Shown here: positions 1,296 through 60,909 of the stretch, one piece after another
Layout of the letters: each line of letters opens with the position of its first letter
Numbering within the stretch: the stretch's first letter is position 1
From: Malacoraja senta
Taxonomy: Eukaryota
Length of the DNA: 64,000 nucleotides
Direction of reading: 5' to 3'
Assembly (NCBI GenBank): GCA_038087875.1
Contig: CM075978.1
Coordinates: forward strand, 42,594,001-42,658,000
Notes under the pieces: model-generated
Database searches by the model: none
Told to the model about the DNA's origin: nothing
What the model saw: the letters and a program-made list of their open reading frames with translations, nothing else
Position numbers and translations under genes: made by a program

Positions 1296-1405
1296 CAATC
1301 TTTGTCCATCACACAAAAGGAAAAAGGAAAACTAGCAGCAATCTTTTCAAATTCTTCCTGTGAAATGTAGCCATCCTGATCGTGATCATAATTTTTAAAA
1401 ACAGA
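1296..1405 (-). CDS. RASGRP1: RASGRP1 exon 12 (EF-hand 1)
   Basis: ttgcag|; encodes [36 protein letters not shown]; donor TG|gtaggt. Confidence 0.95.
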
Positions 1406-4400
1406 CTGCAAAGAGCAAACAAAAGGTTAAATACAAAATGTGCTCTAATTAAAATAATGGAACAGTCCTAAATATACCAGTAGCTATGTTTATCTTAAGA
1501 TTGAAAGACCAACTTTGGGAATTGTTTCTGCTCAATTTTAATTTTAAATCACAGGCTGATAAATAGGGAAAAGTGTGGAAACCACTGCAGACTTAATTGT
1601 CATGGTCCAGGACAAGTGTTAGTCCAATAGGTAAAAGTGCAATCCGTGAAAAATAGGAGCAGGAGTAAGTCATAATACTTCATCAGCTTGCTCTTTTAAT
1701 AAGACCTGGATGAGCTGGTCTTGCCTCAGTTGTCCTGTCTGTTTCCCCAAGTTGATGATTTCCTTTTAATTCCAAAATCTGTCTACCAGCTTACAACATG
1801 TTCTTTCTTGTTTTCAATGGGTGATCCTTTATTCTTATATCAAACCCACATTTGAACATCTTCACTCATGAAGCAAAACATCCTCTCAGCATCTATCTTG
1901 TCAACCTCGCTTCACCTCAGAATTTAGTTTAGAGTTACGGCATGGAAACAGGCCCTTCAACCCACCAAGGCCGCGCCGACCATGATCACCCCATACACTA
2001 GATTTATCCTACACACTAGGGATAATTTACAGAAGCCAATTAACTTACAAACCTACATGTCTTTGAAATGTCGAAGAAAACCGAAGTACTCAGAGAAAAC
2101 CCACGCGGTCACAGGGAGAACATACATGTATGTTTCATTATGAAAACCTCTCAGTGTTCTAATTAAATAGTCATATTGATGTAGAAACTAATGAAATAGG
2201 TGGACATTGTGGAATAATTCATGAAATATGCTCTTGGTGATACCTGCAGACCTAAATTCTTGACCTGATCTTACAGCTTGTGAAACACTCATCAAATTTA
2301 ATGGTCACAGGAAGAATATTCAAACTTCACGCAGACATATTTAATTTACTGATTTTAAAGTAGGGAGAAGCAAACCTAAAGAGAGAATCACTTTTATGCA
2401 TCACAGCAGATTTTAGAATTATTGGCAAAGATCTACGAGTCAACATCATGGCTTGATTGGAGTTTAAGTATGGCCAAGATGAGCCAGGACAGGTGGATAA
2501 AAGATTTGGTTATTTCTTGCTCTATCATTTATTTAATAATATTATAGACAAGCTAGTCTTGCCTCAATGAGTGCAGAACTAACTTCTCAATTGTTATGGG
2601 CTCACATAACTCAAATTGGGAAGGCCACTCACCAGATACAAGTATTCTACACGATTCAGTTGATTTTTATTCTTGTGTCCTGCTTGGTAAAAGCAGTACT
2701 TTTTTCTACTGAAATTAAAGAAATGCATTGATGAAAATCAAATCTTGGGAGGGGAATACAACTTTTATCTGGTCTTCTGGTAACCATTTAGTGATCAATG
2801 CCAAATTTTGCCAATACCTCTGTGTCTTGGAACTACAATACAAAAACTAGTAACTACATCCACAACATTGTAGGAGGCAAAACTCACATCAACCATCCGC
2901 TGAACATGTTTACTGATGGTCTTCGGATCAGGCTTTGGGGTTATTCCGGGGGCCCAGTCTGCTACCATGGGTGGTTTACAAGGAGTTGATGGCTAAATTT
3001 TTTAAAAAAATTAGTTAATTTGCAACTGCAAACCTTCTATATGGGGGGGAGAACATTTATTGTTGCCATCTTAGATACGAATCATCAAGCAGTTTTGATA
3101 CCCAACAATATAATAATAATAATAATTATTATAATAATAATAATAATAATAATAATCATCATAATGCATTTTATTTATGGGTGCCTTTCAGAACACTCAA
3201 GGACACCTTACAGTTAAAACAAGCAAATTACAAATATATAAATAAAATGAAACAAAAACAACATATCCATGAATTTGATAGAAAGTGGAGTTACGTGGGA
3301 TAGGCCAGTCTGAATAGGTGAGTTTTGAGGGAGGTTTTAAAGGTGGGGAGAGACTCTATGGTACGGATGGATAGTGGGAGAGAGTTCCAGAGGCGAGGGG
3401 CAGTACGGCTGAAGTCTCTGAACCCCATCGTGGACAGGCGGGCAGATGGAGTGGAGAGCAGGGAGGAAGAAGAGGATCGGAGAGTTCGGGATGGAGTGTA
3501 AGGCTGGGGGAGTTCAGAGAGGTATGGAGGAGCGAGATTGTGGAGGGCTTTGAAAGTGAGGAGGAGAATCTTAAAATCAGGGAGCCAGTGCAGTTGTTTA
3601 AGGATGGGAGTGATGTGTTGGGTGGATGGGGTTCTGGTGATAATGCGAGCAGCTGAGTTCTGGACCAATTGGAGTTTATGGATGGACTTCTGGGGTAAAC
3701 CAGAGAGGAGAGAGTTACAATAATCAATACGGGAGGTGACGAGGGCGTGGATGAGAGTAGCAGTGCTGTTAGGTGTGAGTGATGGACGAAGACGGTGGAT
3801 AGTGCGTAGGTGAAAGTAAGCAGACCGAGTGAGATTATTGATGTGTTTTTCAAAAGAAAGTGTGCTATCAAGGATGACACCCAGATTCTTGACCTGAGGG
3901 GAAGGAGGAACTATGGAATTGTCAATGGTGTGAGAAATTGGGACATTTAGATAGGGTGGATTTGGAGCCAACAAGGAGAATTTCAGTTTTGTCACTGTTG
4001 AGTTTGAGGAAGTTGTGAACAAACCAGGTTTTAATTTCCACTAAGCAGTCAGACAGGGAAGAGGGAGGAAGCATGGAAGTGGGTTTGGTGGACAGGTAGA
4101 GCTGGGTGTCATCCGTGTAGCAGTGAAATTGAATGTTGTATTTCCTGAAAATAATACCAAGGGGAAGTAAATAAATTATAAAAAGGAGGTGCCCTAGGAC
4201 TGAGCCCTGGGGAACACCAATGGTGACTGGGGAGGGTTGTGATTGGACATTTTTAAGTTGTACAAACTGAGTGCGGCTAGTGTATGGGGTGATCATGGTC
4301 GGCGCGGCCTTGGTGGGTTGAAGGGCCTGTTTCCAGGTGAGTGATGTGTTGATGATACCAATGGAGGCTAGACGGTCGAGGGGGATGTTGTGAGAGATGG

Positions 4401-7400
4401 TGTCGAAGGCAGCAGTCAAATCAAGGAGGATGAGTATGGTGAGAAAACCGGAGTCGGCAGCCATCAGCAGGTCATTGGTGACCTTAACTAATGCTGTTTC
4501 TGTGCTATGGAGAGGGCGAAAACCAGATTGAAATTGTTCATAGAGGTTATTGCTGATGAGATGATTATGAACCTGTGCAGCAACTGTTTTTTCTAGTATT
4601 TTAGAGATAAATGGCAAATTGGAGATTGGTCGGAAATTATTTAGATTGTTGGGATATGTTTCTCCCCATTATTAACTGCCTGTTAACTCTGTAAATTAAA
4701 TGTGCCTAGGATCATTACATGTTGACTGTTTAAACAGTTTATTGACTTCAAAAAGTCATAAATCTAATATTCATTTTCACAACAAGCATGCTTTTTAAAT
4801 CGTTAATTAATAAATGAATGTAAATTTATCTTAACATAGAACTGTACAGAACAGGAACAGGCCCTTCGGCCCATAATGTCCACGCCAAGCATGATGCCAA
4901 GTTAATCTTCTCTGCCTGCACATGATTTATATTTCCCCCATTCTTTGCATATCCATCTTGCCACAGTTCCCATCATGTTAAAATAATTATTCCACAACCA
5001 TATGCGTTTTAAAAGGCTACAATAGGGATTGCGCCACCAAAAAATAGAAAGGACAAATACAAGGGTAATGACAAGAATTGAAGGGTTTTTGATCTGAAAC
5101 ATCAACCGTGTTTCTCTTACCTATGCTGTTACTTACTTCCAGCATATTCTGTTTTTATTTCAGATATCCAGCATCTGCTGTTTGTGATTTGAACAATTCT
5201 GGCCTTCATATTATAGGAAGGCATTAGAGAAAATGCAAAGAAAAATACTGCCTCAATGACCAAATAGATTTCATCTGCCCAGGTAGATTGGATAAGATTG
5301 GTAATTTCCGTACCAAAGAGAACACAGGGATTTTAGAGAGTAAATGTCAGGAAAATGTGTTATTATTTGGCAGGTTAAATTAATGGGCCATAAATATAAG
5401 ACAGCCAATAATAAATTAAATAAAGAATTCACAAGTATCTATTTTACCCAGGTAGTGTTTCGAATGTGTAAGTAATTGCCATCATTAATATGTGAGGTGA
5501 CCAGGATAGAGATGCTTGTCAAATTCAAGATTGAGTGAAGCACAGGACATGGCGATGGAATTAAGTGAAGGATGGAAGGTTTCTCTAGAACATTATCTCC
5601 ATTTGGTGCCTGTTGGGTCAAAGACGCTGCTTCTAAGCTGCAAGTACATTTCATTAATATTTAATATTTTGACTATGCCTCTAAAATAAATTTGGTTGAT
5701 CTAGATGAACCAATGGGAACCAGTGTTGAAAAATGGGAAACTGCAGCATTACAAGATCATATTCCATCAGACTGGCCGAATCAACTCAAGGCAACCAGGG
5801 ATTACAGAAATACGCCTCCAGCTGGATACATTTATCTAATAAAGGTTCAACAATACCCACCAGGAATTAATTTACACTGAAATGCTTGTACTCCATTTCT
5901 ATAACGCCTGGAAAAAAAATGCTCACCCTACAGTAGGATAACAAGAATCAGCCCTATTAGTTGAGTCCCATTGTTACTTCACACTCTACCAGTTTTTCTT
6001 TCAAAGAGAAACAATAAAACACCCTTGCCTCACAGTTCTACTAACACCCAAATAAGATGTCAATGGTACATAAACTGCCACTCCAATTGTACAGAAATAT
6101 CTCAGTAAATGATAAAGAATCCAGTTAGTGAATTATCCTCAACTGATTTAATTTGGATTGCACCTACCTGAACCAGAAAAATATGGTTCACAGTAGCAAG
6201 TGGATGCAGACTAATGCAGCATTAATATAACAAGTCGACATATCTGAACAAAGCTAATTTTAATTTTAGGCAATGGTATAAAGTAAGCAGGATTATACCA
6301 GATACTCATCAAACATCTCCCAGAGAAACATGAAACAAGACTAATCGACTGACACCTGATTTACAAACATATCAAAAATGTGGCTCACCAATATTTTGAG
6401 AATACAACAAATGTTCAAGTCACCTTGGCGTTACAATTACAATTAACACTGACCTCGGCATACTGTACATGTACCCCAAAAAAGTATAACTTTTAATGTA
6501 ACTTCCATATTATATTGGAGTTTTTTTGTTCGGCTGAAACCCTAAGTGAAAGAGTTTCAGATATTGCATATGCTTTCAACCTAAAATCAATTATATGCTT
6601 AAGGAGCCATAAAGCTCTTGATTGGAACATGATCAAATCTGATTGTCTTTCAAATTTCACCAACTGCAATTTCATGACATATAACTTATCTGGCAATCTG
6701 ACAAGATGATTGCAGCTTCAATCAGCAGTAATGCATATCACAATGTGCACTTAATGTGAAACAGCAATATCAACTGACAGAAATGGTATGAGGAAAGTTT
6801 CTTACTGGAGCTTTATTGTTTCGTGGCTCACGTGCATATGAAAGCTCATAAATTTCATCTTCTGTGTAGTAGAGGTCCAGTGAGAGCTGAAATAATGCAA
6901 AATATCAGTTACACCAACTGCTTTCACCAAATGTTTCAGTTTTCACTCACCGCACTACATAAGTGACCCATGTTTGGCAAGTACCTTTTATTGTATATTA
7001 ATAGACCCACTAATTAAGAAATGTTATACTCTTGCAGATCAATTAATGATTTACTGATGATTCAAGCCACCGCAAAAATCTACAGAGGGCACCAGTTACT
7101 CTGATTACAGATGGCAAACATTAAAATGGTAGTTATTGCAGTCACACTTCATCTAACTGCATCAATAAAACCTTTTAAAGAAAGCCAGATACAGAATATT
7201 TTACGCTAAGATCTCAAGTGTGGTTATGGCTTCTGATTATCTCACCTCTTTTTGACAACCTTGCTGGGATAAGATTACACAGGTATCGTCGCCCAGGTCT
7301 TGCCACAATAAGCATTATTCATATGAGCATTAACATGTAACTGAAGACAATATCTGAGTTTAGCCTTATTCCATCTTCAGCAAATGTTTACTAATACTTT

Positions 7401-16400: not shown

Positions 16401-19400
16401 CTTAAGCAAAGAGCCCACAAAAGAATGCAGTACTCCAGGTGTGGTGTGATTAATCCCTTATATAAATACAGCAAACCAACTCTACTTTTATAATCTCCCT
16501 TTCAATTAAGCCAATATTCCATTTGGTTTCTTAATCACTTAATGCATCTCCATGCTAACTCCCTGCGTCCCATGTATTACAATACACAGGTTCTTGTGAA
16601 TAGCACTAGTCTCTAGTCCTTCTCTGTTTAAACAATACACTGCATTTATATTCTTTCTACAACACGGAATAATCTCACATTCTTCAATATAATGGTCTAT
16701 CGGCCATTTTGATTTTGCCCTGAGACCTAACCCATTTATATCCTTCCTCACAACTTACAGTCAAGAAGCAGAGCAACATTGGCAAATTTGGCAAAATCTC
16801 ACTTAGCTTCTTCATTTAATTCATTGCTAAACATTACAAATAGTTATGGCTGCAGTACTTATCTTTATAGGAACCTCCTTGGTTATAGCCTAAATTTAAC
16901 TAATTAAATCCAACTCACTGTTTTCTGTGAGCTAACCAAACCTGTATCCATTCCATAAGCCAATACATAGTTACGTGGCAACTCATTTATGAAATCCAAA
17001 AACACTAATGCCATTGGTTCCCCTTTATCCAATTTCCCCTGGAATGCACTGCCAGGCATAGAGCCGGAGGCAGATATGTGTAACTAAGAGGCTTTTGGAT
17101 ATGCAGGGAATGGAAGGGAATGGATCATGTGCTTAATCAAATCATGTTGACTTTAATTGCACTATGATTTTCTAGCCATCTTGATACTATTACCTTAATA
17201 ATCGATTAATTACAATTAAGATCTATAAATTAAAACATGTTCTCATCATCCACTGTGACAATAATATTTTGGCAAAACTATTTACACATTTTGCAAAAAC
17301 CACTTGCACCATCCATACCTGAGCAACACGAATAAACTTGATGAAGACTTCAGCTCGTAGTTGTGGTGTAGGTCTACTGAGAACCATAAGCTGAACCCAC
17401 TGTGAGATGCCATTACACAAAGCAACAGAGCGTTCCATCGTGGGATTGTCCTTTACACAACCAGTCAATATATAATTCTGATAATCTGAAAACTGGGCAA
17501 AGCAAAATCCAGTCATTTTGTCATTGTTACCCATTTTATCAGCTTTGTCATATCCTGTCTTTTAATGGTAAGACAGCTTCTGATAGAACTGCAGTTGCTG
17601 GAGTCACAATAACTGTTAACACAAGGAATTATAGATGCTGGAATCTTGATCACTCTGAAGAAGGTTCCTGTCCTGAAATGTCACCCATTCATGCTCTCCA
17701 GAGATGCTGCCTGACCAACTGCGTTACTTCAGCACGTTGTTTTTTGCAGAATTACTGTGAATTGTTTAGGTGGCAGAAAGGTCTATTCACCTTAACATGA
17801 GAACATGCACAAACAAAAGAAATGCATTCCAAAGACGTACAGGTGTGTAGGTTAATTGGCTTCTGTAAATTGTCCTTAGTGCGTAGGACTAGAACTAGTA
17901 TACGGGTGATCGCTGGTTGGCGCAGACTCAGTGGGCCGAAGAAAGCCTGTTTCCATGCTGTATCTCTAAACTAATTTAAACTTCCTGCACTATTTATTAA
18001 GCTTCCCACCAGCCTGCAAATAGTGAAGGGAAAGTCAAGGATGGTCATGTTTGGCGTCAATGGCAAGATGTGACCAGGAAGCATCTCTTCGAAGGGACTA
18101 AAGATATAAACTATGTCTTGTGCATATAATCATTCCAAAGTTGAATTTGAAGCAATGCTGGATATCAACTGTGGTTTAATTTTAATATTTTTGCTTCTGA
18201 ATCTATTTAACAAATTGGGTATTTTTTAGGGGAACAAATAAATATTTGGGTAATTTCTTAAGGCATTTGGAAGGTTGTCTGTTAAAGTTGTTACACAAGA
18301 CAAGGTTATGGAATTAGGCATATAATATTAGCATAAATACAGAAATGGTTAGAAGACTAAACCAGCAAATGTTTTGAGAGGCATTAAGCATTGAGTGCTG
18401 CAAAGAAAAGTGCTTGGGCCTCAACTTTAATAATCTACATTAATGACACACATCAAGAGATTGTGTGTAATATATCCATATTTGTTGTTAATACAAAGTT
18501 GGGTGGGAAAATAATCCTTGAGTAGGACACAAAGAAGTTGCTAAGGAATTTTCAGACAATATAATTGAGTGGGCAAGATGGTGGCAGACAGAAAATAATG
18601 TGGATAAATGTGAATAAATCAAACTTTGATGGAAAGAATGACAAAGAACATTTTAAAATGGAGAGCAAGAATTCACAAACAATTAGAAAGGTAAACAGAG
18701 AGTTGGTCTTTTACTGCATTGGAGTACAAGGGTAGGGAAATCCTCATACAAGTATACTACGAGAATACACTTGGGAACTCTATGGACAGATTTGCTTTTT
18801 TTATCCTCAGGAAGGATGAATTAGCTTTGGAGATATGATGATAAATATTTTCTAGATTGATCCATGGGATAGAAGGGCTACCGAATGATGAGGAAGAATA
18901 TTAGAATTTGGATTAATATGAGGTGATCTCACTGAAACGTACAAATATGCTGAAAGAGTAGGACAGGGTGGATGTTGAAAAGTTATTTCCTTGTTTTGAA
19001 AAATCAAGAATGGTTTCAGGATAAACTATCAAACATTTAGATCTAAGGTCAGAAAGTATTCCTGTACTTAGAGCATTGTGAATCTCTGGAAATCTACACC
19101 CCAAAAGCTGTGCCCTCTTTGAGGAAATCTACACCCCAAAGAGGGCACAGCTTTAAGGTGAAAGGGGCAAAGTTTTAAAGGCGATATGCAGGGCAAATTA
19201 TTTTACACAGAGAATATTGGGTACTTGGAACGCACTGCCAGGCATAGAGCCAGAGGCAGATAGAATAGGTGTACCTAAGAGGCTTTTAGATATGCAGGAA
19301 ATAGAAGGAAATGGATCAGGTGCTAAGGAGATTAGTTTAACTTGGAAACATGTTCGGCACAAACATTATGGGCTGGAGGGCCTGTTCCTGTGCTGTACTG

Positions 19401-42170: not shown

Positions 42171-43107
42171 TATATATCTCTCACTAGCTACGTCCGTTAT
42201 TGAATGACTTAGTTACTATTACAGAGTAATGCAATTACATCATTTTCATACATTTTCTAATTTAACCAATGCATTTAATAGATACAGGAACTTTTAGAAC
42301 CATAGCATTGTACCCTCGTGTGCAGCATGAAAAATAAGTGGGACTAATACAAACTTAAAAGGTTTGCGTTGGCTAATAATTTAGTTGATTAAAGTGCTTC
42401 CTTTCCTCTGATATCACTATCTGAGAAATTGAAAGGGAGTCTGAAGGAGGTGCCCAGTTCGTTGTGAGCCCAAGACGATCTCAGCAGCAGAGAAATTCTG
42501 AAGGATGTTTCAGTCATTCATTCTATGATACGATACGATAGAACTTTATTTATCCCGGTCAACAGTCATAAAAACACAAAATACATGAAATATTAAATTA
42601 AAGTGACGAGTGGAAAGGCTTGAGGTATGTGCAAGGATTGGGGAGGGGTGGAGGGGGGAGTCAGTCTCTGTCTGTCCCACGACAGAAGGGGGAGGGATTG
42701 TAAAGTTTGATAGCCACAGGGAAGAAGGATCCCCTGTGGCATTCTGTATTGCAACTTGGTTGAACCAGTCTGTAGCTGAAGGCACTCCTCAGGTTTACAG
42801 GTGTGTCGTGTCATCTCGAGATGGGGCATGCATGCTGATGGACTGGAATAGAGTATTTTCACATGTTATATCTGCAATAAGGAGGCAGGCACCAACCACT
42901 TGACTGTTATGGACGTCCGAGCAGCAATTCCGATATGGCTGAGTGATCCAGCCGGGCATACATCAAATCAGACAACTCTTCCAGACTCCTGACTGAAATG
43001 ATAAATGTGCCATATTGTATGATATCTTCAACAAACTGATAAATGGAGGGAGCATTGTAGCAATACAACTGGTCAGTGATGGAGAAACTTCTTGTAATAA
43101 AATACAC

Positions 43108-43357
43108 AGGTGGGCGGCACAGTGGCACGTTTGGACGTTTCCCCATGACAGCGTGGGTTTTCTCTGAAATCTTCGGTTTCATCCCACATTCCAAAGACGT
43201 ACAGGTTTGTAGGTTAATTGGCTTAGGTTTGTATACTTGGTATAAGTGTAAATTGTCCCTAGCGTGTGTGTAGGCTTGTGTTAATGCGCAAGGATAGCTG
43301 GTCGGCCTGCACTCGGTGGGCCGAAGGGCCTGTATCTCTAAACTAAGCTAAACTAAA
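43108..43357 (+). mobile_element. V-SINE/HE1-like SINE, internally deleted
   Basis: ggcggcacagtggc head, V-domain core, ctctaaactaa tail. Confidence 0.75.
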
Positions 43358-43949
43358 GGTCAGAAGAGAGGCAATTGGTGACCCCTGATCAGTTTGATTA
43401 ACTGAGAGATCACCAATGAGACGACATCAAATAGACGCAGTAAGCCACAAAGATAACATAAATGGAGATTGGACCTTGGCAAGATAGCTCAGACAACATA
43501 ATCTTTATTTTTTACTATATATTTGACCTGATGAAAATCCTTTCACAAAATATTACTTTGTTGCACAGAAAATCATTTACTTAACAATAGTAAAGTAAAA
43601 GCTATTCTGTGCAACAGTAATATTTTGTTTAGTCTTAAAGTAATATACCTTTATCGTACTGTTAATAGATGTTGTTCATTCACAATGGTCGCAATTATCT
43701 GCAGTAGAAATAAAAAATGTATAATGTTCTGCAGTCTGATCTAATAAATAAATCAACACAAGTCAGGCTCATAACTGACGGTCAGCCTCAGAAAACTTGG
43801 TTAATTTAAATTACTCCATCAACACTAAAGTGAAACATTAAAATATGAAGTTTAAACAGTGAATAAAATAGTAATAGATATGTTTTTTTACATTTTTAAG
43901 TATGAAAACATTTCAATGGAATCTCATTTGGTTGTCTTTAGCAATGATG

Positions 43950-54974: not shown

Positions 54975-55795
54975 CACAAATAAAGATAAATAAGTTCGAT
55001 TTAATTCAACCACAACAGATTTGCATTTACCAGGTGATCAAAGCAGGGAACTGAATATTCCAGGTTGGCATTCCAGAAAAACAGGCAGAATGGTAAGAGG
55101 CAGTGGACAGCATCTCTGCAGTGAAGGGTGATGCCAACAAAAATAAGAAAGAACCCAGGGCTGGAAATGGAATCAATGTAGATGAAGATGAAGAATAAAA
55201 AAAATAGCTCAAAGTCCTTCAGTAATAACTGTGGAGTTGGACAAACTGATCAGTGGGGAAATAAAGTTAAAGAATATTTTTTTATTCTTCATCTGTGTAA
55301 TCCACTTCCAGCCTTGGGTTCTTTCTCATTTTTGTCAGCATCACCCTTCACTGCAGAGATGCTGTCCACCGCCTCTTTCCATTCTGCCTGTTTTGCTGGA
55401 ATGTCAACCTGGAATATTCAGTTCCCTGCTTTGATCACCTCGTAAATGCAAATCTGTTGTGGCTGAATTAAATCTAATTTATTTATCTTTATTTGTTGAC
55501 ATTCCAGAAAAACAGGCGGAATGGAAAGAGGCGGTGGACAGCATCTCTGCAGTGAAGGATGATGCCAACAAAAATGAGAAAAAACCAGGGCTGGAAGTGG
55601 AATCAATCAATCAATCAATCAATTAGTTTTACTCATCACATACACAATAAAGTGCAGTCAAGTGGAAGTGCATTCAGTCACATACACAATAAAGTGGAAT
55701 CAATTTAGATGAAGATGAAGATTTTTTTTAAATGCCCAAGGTCCTCCAGTAATAACTGTGGAGTTGGATAAACTGATCAGTGGAGAAATAAAGAA
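54975..55795. repeat. forward-inverted-forward triplication of a decayed CR1 endonuclease segment
   Basis: About 54977-55266 forward, 55276-55496 inverted, 55494-55793 forward. Confidence 0.88.
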
Positions 55796-59894: not shown

Positions 59895-60290
59895 TTAAAT
59901 ATTCTCAGAAGTTGCTTTAGTTTATGACCTCACTGTTCCAATTAAAAGTACACCTTTTCTCCTTGCATAATATTCATGGAATAATGAACATGGTTGTAAA
60001 ATTCAGGTCAAAAGAACATAATAGAAGCAACTTAATTAGCCATGATCAAATTATTCTCATTGTTAAGGGAAAATACCTCTCAGTACAAACTTCTACTTCA
60101 ATCTTTTAATTAAATGTAATATAATACCAGGTCAGCAGAAAGCTAAAATTTTAAGATGTTAGACATTTTATATCTTAAACAAATGCAAGACAAATAGTTC
60201 TTATGCTCTCTGACTAAAACCTCCATTAACATTCCAGCTAAGTGTTCAACAACTAAAAGGTTGTATCTCCCTGCATTAGGTTGAGCAACA

Positions 60291-60501
60291 GAATGTATAG
60301 GAAGGAACTACAGATGTTGGTTTAAACCGAAGATAGACACAAAAAGCTGGAGTAACTCAGCAGGACAGGCAGCATCTCTGGAGAGAAGGAATGGGTGACG
60401 TTTCGAGTCTGAAGAAGGGTCTCAACCCGAAACATCACCCCTTACTTCTCTCCAGAGATGCTGCCTGTCCCGCTGAGTTATTCCAACTTTTTGTGTCTAT
60501 C
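60291..60501. mobile_element. palindromic Penelope-derived insert with hammerhead-like core
   Basis: Inverted arms around CTGAAGAagggtctcaacccGAAAC; 15-bp TSD ttaggttgagcaaca at 60276-60290 and 60502-60516. Confidence 0.82.
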
Positions 60502-60909
60502 TTAGGTTGAGCAACATACTGATATTAACTACATCAGTATGCTTCTCAACCTATAGTCTAATATGCTTCTCAACCTAAAGGGAGAGGGATACAACTTCTT
60601 AGCTGCTGAGCACTGAGCTGGAAAGTTTAATGGATAACTACAGTGGGTGAAGCATATTAGACTATTGGTATACATGCCCTGTATAGTATGCCCACTATAT
60701 AGTTTCAAGCTGAAGGTATACAGGCAAATGGAACGTGAACACCATCTTCCCATCTCTTCTCTAACCCCCGAGTGGTTTCCTGTCAATTTTTCCATTTGAA
60801 TATTTTCTCTTACTTCTCAATACTATGTTGATAGGGTCGCATGCCCAATCTTACAGCAATTTTATTCTAGATAGCTACTTTAAATTGTTCAAAAGGCAGC
60901 TGATGTATA

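Follow-up and report, generated by a model that had tools for sequence, protein, structure and literature searches.

A perfect 59-bp inverted repeat around RASGRP1 exon 11 of the skate Malacoraja senta and its probable origin by templated insertion

In Malacoraja senta, the two introns that border RASGRP1 exon 11 carry a perfect 59-bp inverted repeat, in which a segment of a SINE in intron 11 is found again, in inverted orientation, within a LINE in intron 10. The intron-10 arm is probably a lineage-specific scar of microhomology-mediated template switching, either of the MMBIR/FoSTeS kind or through fold-back synthesis in double-strand break (DSB) repair. Throughout, the window is the whole 64-kb stretch of DNA (64,000 nucleotides) that was analysed.

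The inverted repeat and its host elements

The segments at 1943–2001 and 4277–4335 are reverse-complementary at 59 of 59 positions, so that the exact match claimed in an earlier, sequence-only reading is reproduced on recomputation. The identity ends abruptly on both sides of each arm, the flanking sequences are unrelated, and the distance from template to insert is 2275 nt (approximately 2.3 kb). In a self-comparison of the whole 64 kb, this 59-nt pair is both the sole repeat pair at 100% and the longest exact repeat; the runner-up pairs are 97% identical over 38 nt and 95% identical over 75 nt. Elsewhere in the window, large imperfect palindromes or foldbacks are located at 54976–55601 and 60222–60634, self-inverted over 531 nt at 83% and over 438 nt at 74%. 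The features around exon 11 are collected in Table 1.

Table 1. Features around RASGRP1 exon 11 in the window, with the basis of each assignment
Feature	Coordinates	Strand	Basis
RASGRP1 exon 12, start of the EF domain	1298..1405	-	translation, tblastn
5′-truncated SINE copy in intron 11, sense on the minus strand	1921..2135	-	alignment, BLAST
Downstream arm, template segment within the intron-11 SINE	1943..2001	-	aligns to other SINE family members
RASGRP1 exon 11, 105 nt, phase 0-0, 35 aa	2888..2992	-	phmmer, splice sites
(ATA)n microsatellite at the LINE 3′ end	3100..3170	.	sequence
5′-truncated L2/CR1-like LINE with RVT_1 reverse transcriptase (5′ limit approximate)	3171..4700	-	ORFs, reverse-transcriptase homologues with PF00078
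Upstream arm, inverted copy of the SINE segment in RASGRP1 intron 10	4277..4335	-	59/59 versus 1943–2001
Diverged SINE fragment in intron 10	4845..4895	-	78% complementary to part of the inserted arm
RASGRP1 exon 10, 81 nt	6806..6886	-	translation, splice context, tblastn

The SINE family of the downstream arm is represented by at least seven fragments in the window, and the family alignment took in the copies at 17600–18010, 43000–43380 and 4800–5100. Measured by BLAST against the copy at 1925–2135, the remaining copies are 72–86% identical, including those at 17825–17973 (81%), 43140–43336 (79–82%) and 4856–4895 (78%), in agreement with the earlier remark that the other copies in the window differ widely. 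Between two independent family members at 80% identity, a match at 59 of 59 positions would arise with a chance of approximately 2e-6. The 3′ end of the SINE (...CTCTAAACTAA) is located at approximately 1921–1942, beyond the copied 59-mer, so that the copied fragment lacks the last 22 nt of the SINE. Scans of the window with Rfam, at the gathering threshold, and for tRNAs gave no matches.

The inserted 59-mer is situated within the reverse-transcriptase frame of the minus-strand LINE, whose open reading frames at 3922–4617 and 3291–4022 are separated by a single frameshift near 3925–4020. At the place where the window has the insert, all 30 of the 30 nearest L2-type reverse-transcriptase proteins show W-FxSYLSG-RTQF, which supports the earlier proposal that the 59-mer takes the place of codons in the LINE frame. 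The insert peptide is absent from every protein retrieved in this search for L2 reverse-transcriptase relatives, and a second protein search with a 137-aa piece gave no close relative of the LINE copy. For the orthologous LINE open reading frames, the protein collection holds nothing closer than 81%, and the window's own frame is not on record there. No second copy of the LINE was found in the 64-kb window; a paralogous LINE (L001) has the 20 nt uninterrupted, where they are replaced here. The LINE frame stays open through the patch, with a net gain of 36 nt. A meaning for this preserved frame was considered and rejected, since the copy is truncated and frameshifted and a frame free of stops across 19 codons has a chance probability of approximately 0.13 by our own estimate.

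Orthologous loci and polarity of the insertion

The RASGRP1 locus of Amblyraja radiata (L003) aligns colinearly with the window at 96.4% identity, and that of Leucoraja erinacea (L004) does so at 96.1%. Its RASGRP1 exons mark the window as skate sequence nearest to A. radiata, though distinct from both of these species. Both species carry the same LINE at the same place without the insert, which is the outcome of the comparison with related species that the sequence-only reading had proposed. Both outgroups read ...CACCTGG-TTCACATCATACCTCTCCGG-CCG... across the site, whereas the window reads ...CACCTGG-[56 nt]-CCG..., and the ancestral 20 nt, corresponding to the codons FTSYLSG, are kept in both outgroup skates. 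The (ATA)n microsatellite at the LINE 3′ end also differs in length among the species, with a 42-nt gap in both outgroups. At the template site, the SINE is present at the orthologous position of A. radiata, where the arm is identical at 57 of 59 positions; in L. erinacea, most of the SINE is gone through a 917-nt deletion.

Over a 4.6-kb region, the divergence is 3.6% between the window and A. radiata and 3.9% between the window and L. erinacea, against 2.0% between A. radiata and L. erinacea; the species of the window is therefore the outgroup to that pair. Since both orthologues have the LINE without the patch, the LINE insertion is ancestral, and the patch arose afterwards in the lineage of the window. 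Judged from the three loci, both the LINE and the SINE were already present in the common ancestor of the three skates. The copying direction is from the SINE to the LINE, because the segment aligns to the SINE family and the LINE family is without it.

Two smaller rearrangements are seen in L. erinacea. The 917-nt deletion in intron 11 (L004 at approximately 83272; window-equivalent 1951–2867) has TGTT microhomology at its breakpoints, one of which is located 8 nt inside the SINE segment from which the window insert was copied, so that two independent microhomology-mediated rearrangements meet at the same few bases of the SINE. The L. erinacea gene model is flagged LOW QUALITY, and the 917-nt deletion is possibly an assembly error. 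In addition, the L. erinacea LINE has a 14-nt deletion (window-equivalent 4259–4272) with ACT microhomology, which begins 4 nt from the exit junction of the window insertion and beside a CGGCCG palindrome. The deletion and the insertion near CGGCCG may mark a local break-prone spot, or their proximity may be a coincidence.

Junctions and rival origins

Compared with the orthologous empty site, the insertion removed 20 nt of the LINE and added 56 nt; the 59-mer consists of the 56 new nt and 3 nt (TGG) common to the LINE. The microhomology between the LINE and the template comprises TGG (3 nt) at the entry and a weak G (1 nt) at the exit. No target-site duplication is present at the insert, and 20 nt of the target are lost instead. 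The earlier claim of a recent local templated insertion, as opposed to an independent retroposition, is strongly supported by the two empty orthologous sites, the junction microhomology and the missing SINE 3′ end.

A patch of 59 nt created by the assembler or by polishing is improbable and is given little weight. The LINE–insert–LINE junctions are known from one assembly only, and sequencing runs presumed to be from this species contain 0.64–0.69 of the words sampled from 1800–4500, a figure that carries no positional information. Against such an artefact stands the clean 20-nt replacement with microhomology at both junctions, which is a biological signature; nor does the structure resemble a typical collapse or chimera, since the flanks align undisturbed to two species.

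Still less probable is that a SINE fragment retroposed independently into the LINE, or that an older fragment already at this spot was converted by the neighbouring copy. The abundance of the SINE family in the window speaks for either, but the 3′ 22 nt and the tail, at which target-primed reverse transcription starts, are missing from the fragment, and the inserted segment is identical to the neighbouring SINE and only approximately 80% identical to the others. Retroposition is ruled out by this missing SINE 3′ end together with the 20-nt deletion found in place of a target-site duplication. Gene conversion of an older fragment is ruled out by the empty ancestral site, as neither outgroup species has a SINE fragment at this spot of the LINE.

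LINE reverse transcriptases can switch templates, so that a jump onto another RNA during the original retrotransposition is conceivable in principle; its probability here is negligible, since the orientation, as reasoned from the strands, is wrong for copying the host pre-mRNA, and it is refuted by the two other skates, in which the same LINE lacks the patch, which therefore post-dates LINE integration.

Mechanism and age

For the preferred templated insertion, a DNA 3′ end within the LINE would have annealed, through a very short stretch of homology, to the complementary strand at the SINE, 2.3 kb distant; a single uninterrupted tract of 56–59 nt would then have been copied, followed by a return to the LINE 20 nt further on. 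Two geometries, both derived from strand polarity, may account for these steps. In an MMBIR/FoSTeS model, the nascent strand would leave its template at TGG, prime on the complementary strand, copy the segment and return. In a snap-back model, the resected 3′ tail of a DSB would fold back and use sequence lying upstream on its own strand as a template, and the copied product would then be joined to the other end at CCA/TGG. The tract length and the distance appear to fit MMBIR-like events better than Pol-theta templated insertions (TINS).

The arms also bear on the age of the event. Had the insertion occurred just as this lineage separated from the Amblyraja–Leucoraja clade, the arms would be expected to differ at approximately 2.1 positions (P(0) = 0.12); the number observed is 0, with a 95% bound at 85% of the branch. 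These figures point weakly to the younger third of the branch as the most probable date, and the three CpG sites in the arm favour a younger date. On present evidence, the event is an ordinary mutation, assumed to be neutral.

RASGRP1 exon 11 between the arms

The two arms sit in introns 10 and 11, on either side of exon 11, which is the 11th coding exon in the exon maps of three full-length batoid loci. Its translation is identical to human RasGRP1 (PDB 4l9m) at 29 of 35 residues in a phmmer search (E = 7e-14), and the match to RasGRP4 is far weaker. The peptide aligns around Trp 454 of human RasGRP1, and this tryptophan is conserved. The alignment falls on the Cdc25–EF linker, whose residues are autoinhibitory in RasGRP1 (PMC3728621), as the sequence-only reading had stated for the exon. 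Its phase, 0-0, follows from the placement of the neighbouring exons 10 and 12, and both these exons and the splice sites agree with the earlier description of a 105-nt exon lying between the arms. The donor is GTGAGT, and the acceptor consists of a T-run followed by an A-run, a poor pyrimidine tract. Just past the donor, the window and L. erinacea have a GCCTCC motif (window 2868–2873, approximately +15 to +20 of intron 11); these 6 nt are missing in A. radiata.

Exon-11-less RasGRP1 isoforms are annotated as models in a sawfish, two birds, a lizard and a sturgeon. In the sawfish, Pristis pectinata, the annotated model X3 (P0510 versus P0513) is exactly 35 aa shorter; the further models are P0490, P0494, P0495 and P0378. 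Among the species with such isoforms, flanking repeats were sought in the sawfish locus (Pristis X1), and no significant inverted repeat across exon 11 was found in the Pristis, Amblyraja or Leucoraja loci. Since Pristis pectinata skips the exon, by annotation, without a repeat, the repeat is not required for skipping. Exon 11 thus has the appearance of an old cassette exon whose skipping needs no repeat, and the new repeat could at most modulate this skipping.

Possible effect of the duplex on splicing

In the pre-mRNA, 1285 nt separate the upstream arm from exon 11, and 887 nt separate the exon from the downstream arm. The duplex of the two arms has a predicted energy of −131.7 kcal/mol, and introns 10 and 11 share no other significant complementarity; the sole within-intron pairing competitor covers 40 nt at 78%. 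Such a duplex could in principle loop out exon 11 and increase in-frame skipping, which would give a RasGRP1 without its autoinhibitory linker, or else back-splicing or A-to-I editing. This functional reading concerns the consequence of the repeat and can hold together with an origin by templated insertion, but it is considered unlikely. The predicted energy, the single cross-exon complement with one weak competitor and the poor pyrimidine tract of the acceptor are all in its favour, as is the cassette behaviour of the exon elsewhere, in human variant A and in the other annotated isoforms. Furthermore, complementary repeats of 30–40 nt are enough for exon circularisation in minigenes (PMC4201285). 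Against it, exons of 400 nt or less were circularised poorly or not at all in the same work and exon 11 has only 105 nt, the arms are remote from the splice sites, and the skipping in Pristis pectinata is annotated without a flanking repeat.

From these points, the skipping or editing put forward in the sequence-only reading is plausible, and a single-exon circRNA is unlikely; no RASGRP1 circRNA was found in the literature. Judged from the sequence, the most likely consequences would be modest: an intronic duplex that ADAR may edit, and possibly a slight change in how often exon 11 is included. The stronger proposition, that a single repair event, confined to one skate lineage, made a 59-bp duplex because of which exon 11 is skipped or back-spliced measurably more often than in Amblyraja and Leucoraja, is more doubtful again than function in general. 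If true, it would provide a dated natural experiment in which the scar of a templated insertion rewires the splicing of an immune signalling gene. Skates that have the insert and skates that lack it are a natural pair in which the effect of a short perfect repeat on the inclusion of a disease-relevant cassette exon could be compared.

Comparison with known systems

Two known systems resemble the exon 11 arrangement. As described in passages of PMC8416054, human RASGRP1 variant A (Yasuda 2007; Kono 2018) skips exon 11 in T cells, which bears out the earlier statement that exon-11-skipped transcripts are reported in humans. The exon concerned is the orthologous 35-aa in-frame linker exon, but in those passages the skipping is tied to SRSF1 levels and not to an inverted repeat. 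The repeats that drive circRNA formation or skipping (Liang and Wilusz 2014, PMC4201285) share with the skate locus complements of more than 30–40 nt in both introns and little competition. The difference lies in the exon, whose 105 nt fall outside the length range of efficient circularisation, and in the position of the repeats, approximately 0.9–1.3 kb from the splice sites; the skate case is known here from the genome sequence.

With regard to the insertion itself, Pol-theta TINS are local insertions of 3–30 bp with primary tracts rarely longer than 10 bp, and their inverted-repeat type is explained by a resected 3′ tail that primes on itself as a hairpin and is finally joined at short microhomology (PMC7165422). 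The skate insert is likewise of the inverted-repeat type (Carvajal-Garcia et al. 2020), but it is a single 56-nt tract copied from 2.3 kb away. A closer counterpart is found in the microhomology-mediated templated insertions termed MMB-TI, which are linked to MMBIR/FoSTeS (Osia et al. 2021, PMC8421209), in which an inverted insertion is derived from a nearby template, has microhomology at the junctions and persists as a germline variant. The skate insertion is similarly inverted relative to a nearby complementary template, with 3 nt and 1 nt of junction microhomology, is accompanied by a small deletion, and is retained as a harmless germline or evolutionary variant. It differs in that the template is 2.3 kb distant, not immediately adjacent, and the homology at the exit is 1 nt exact. 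In this cartilaginous fish, a germline templated insertion is thus polarised by outgroups, with the template, the recipient, two empty sites and both junctions visible, and it illustrates that a repair scar can make a perfect intronic inverted repeat in one step and with no transposition. As such, the insertion is a fresh example of an already known class of mutation.
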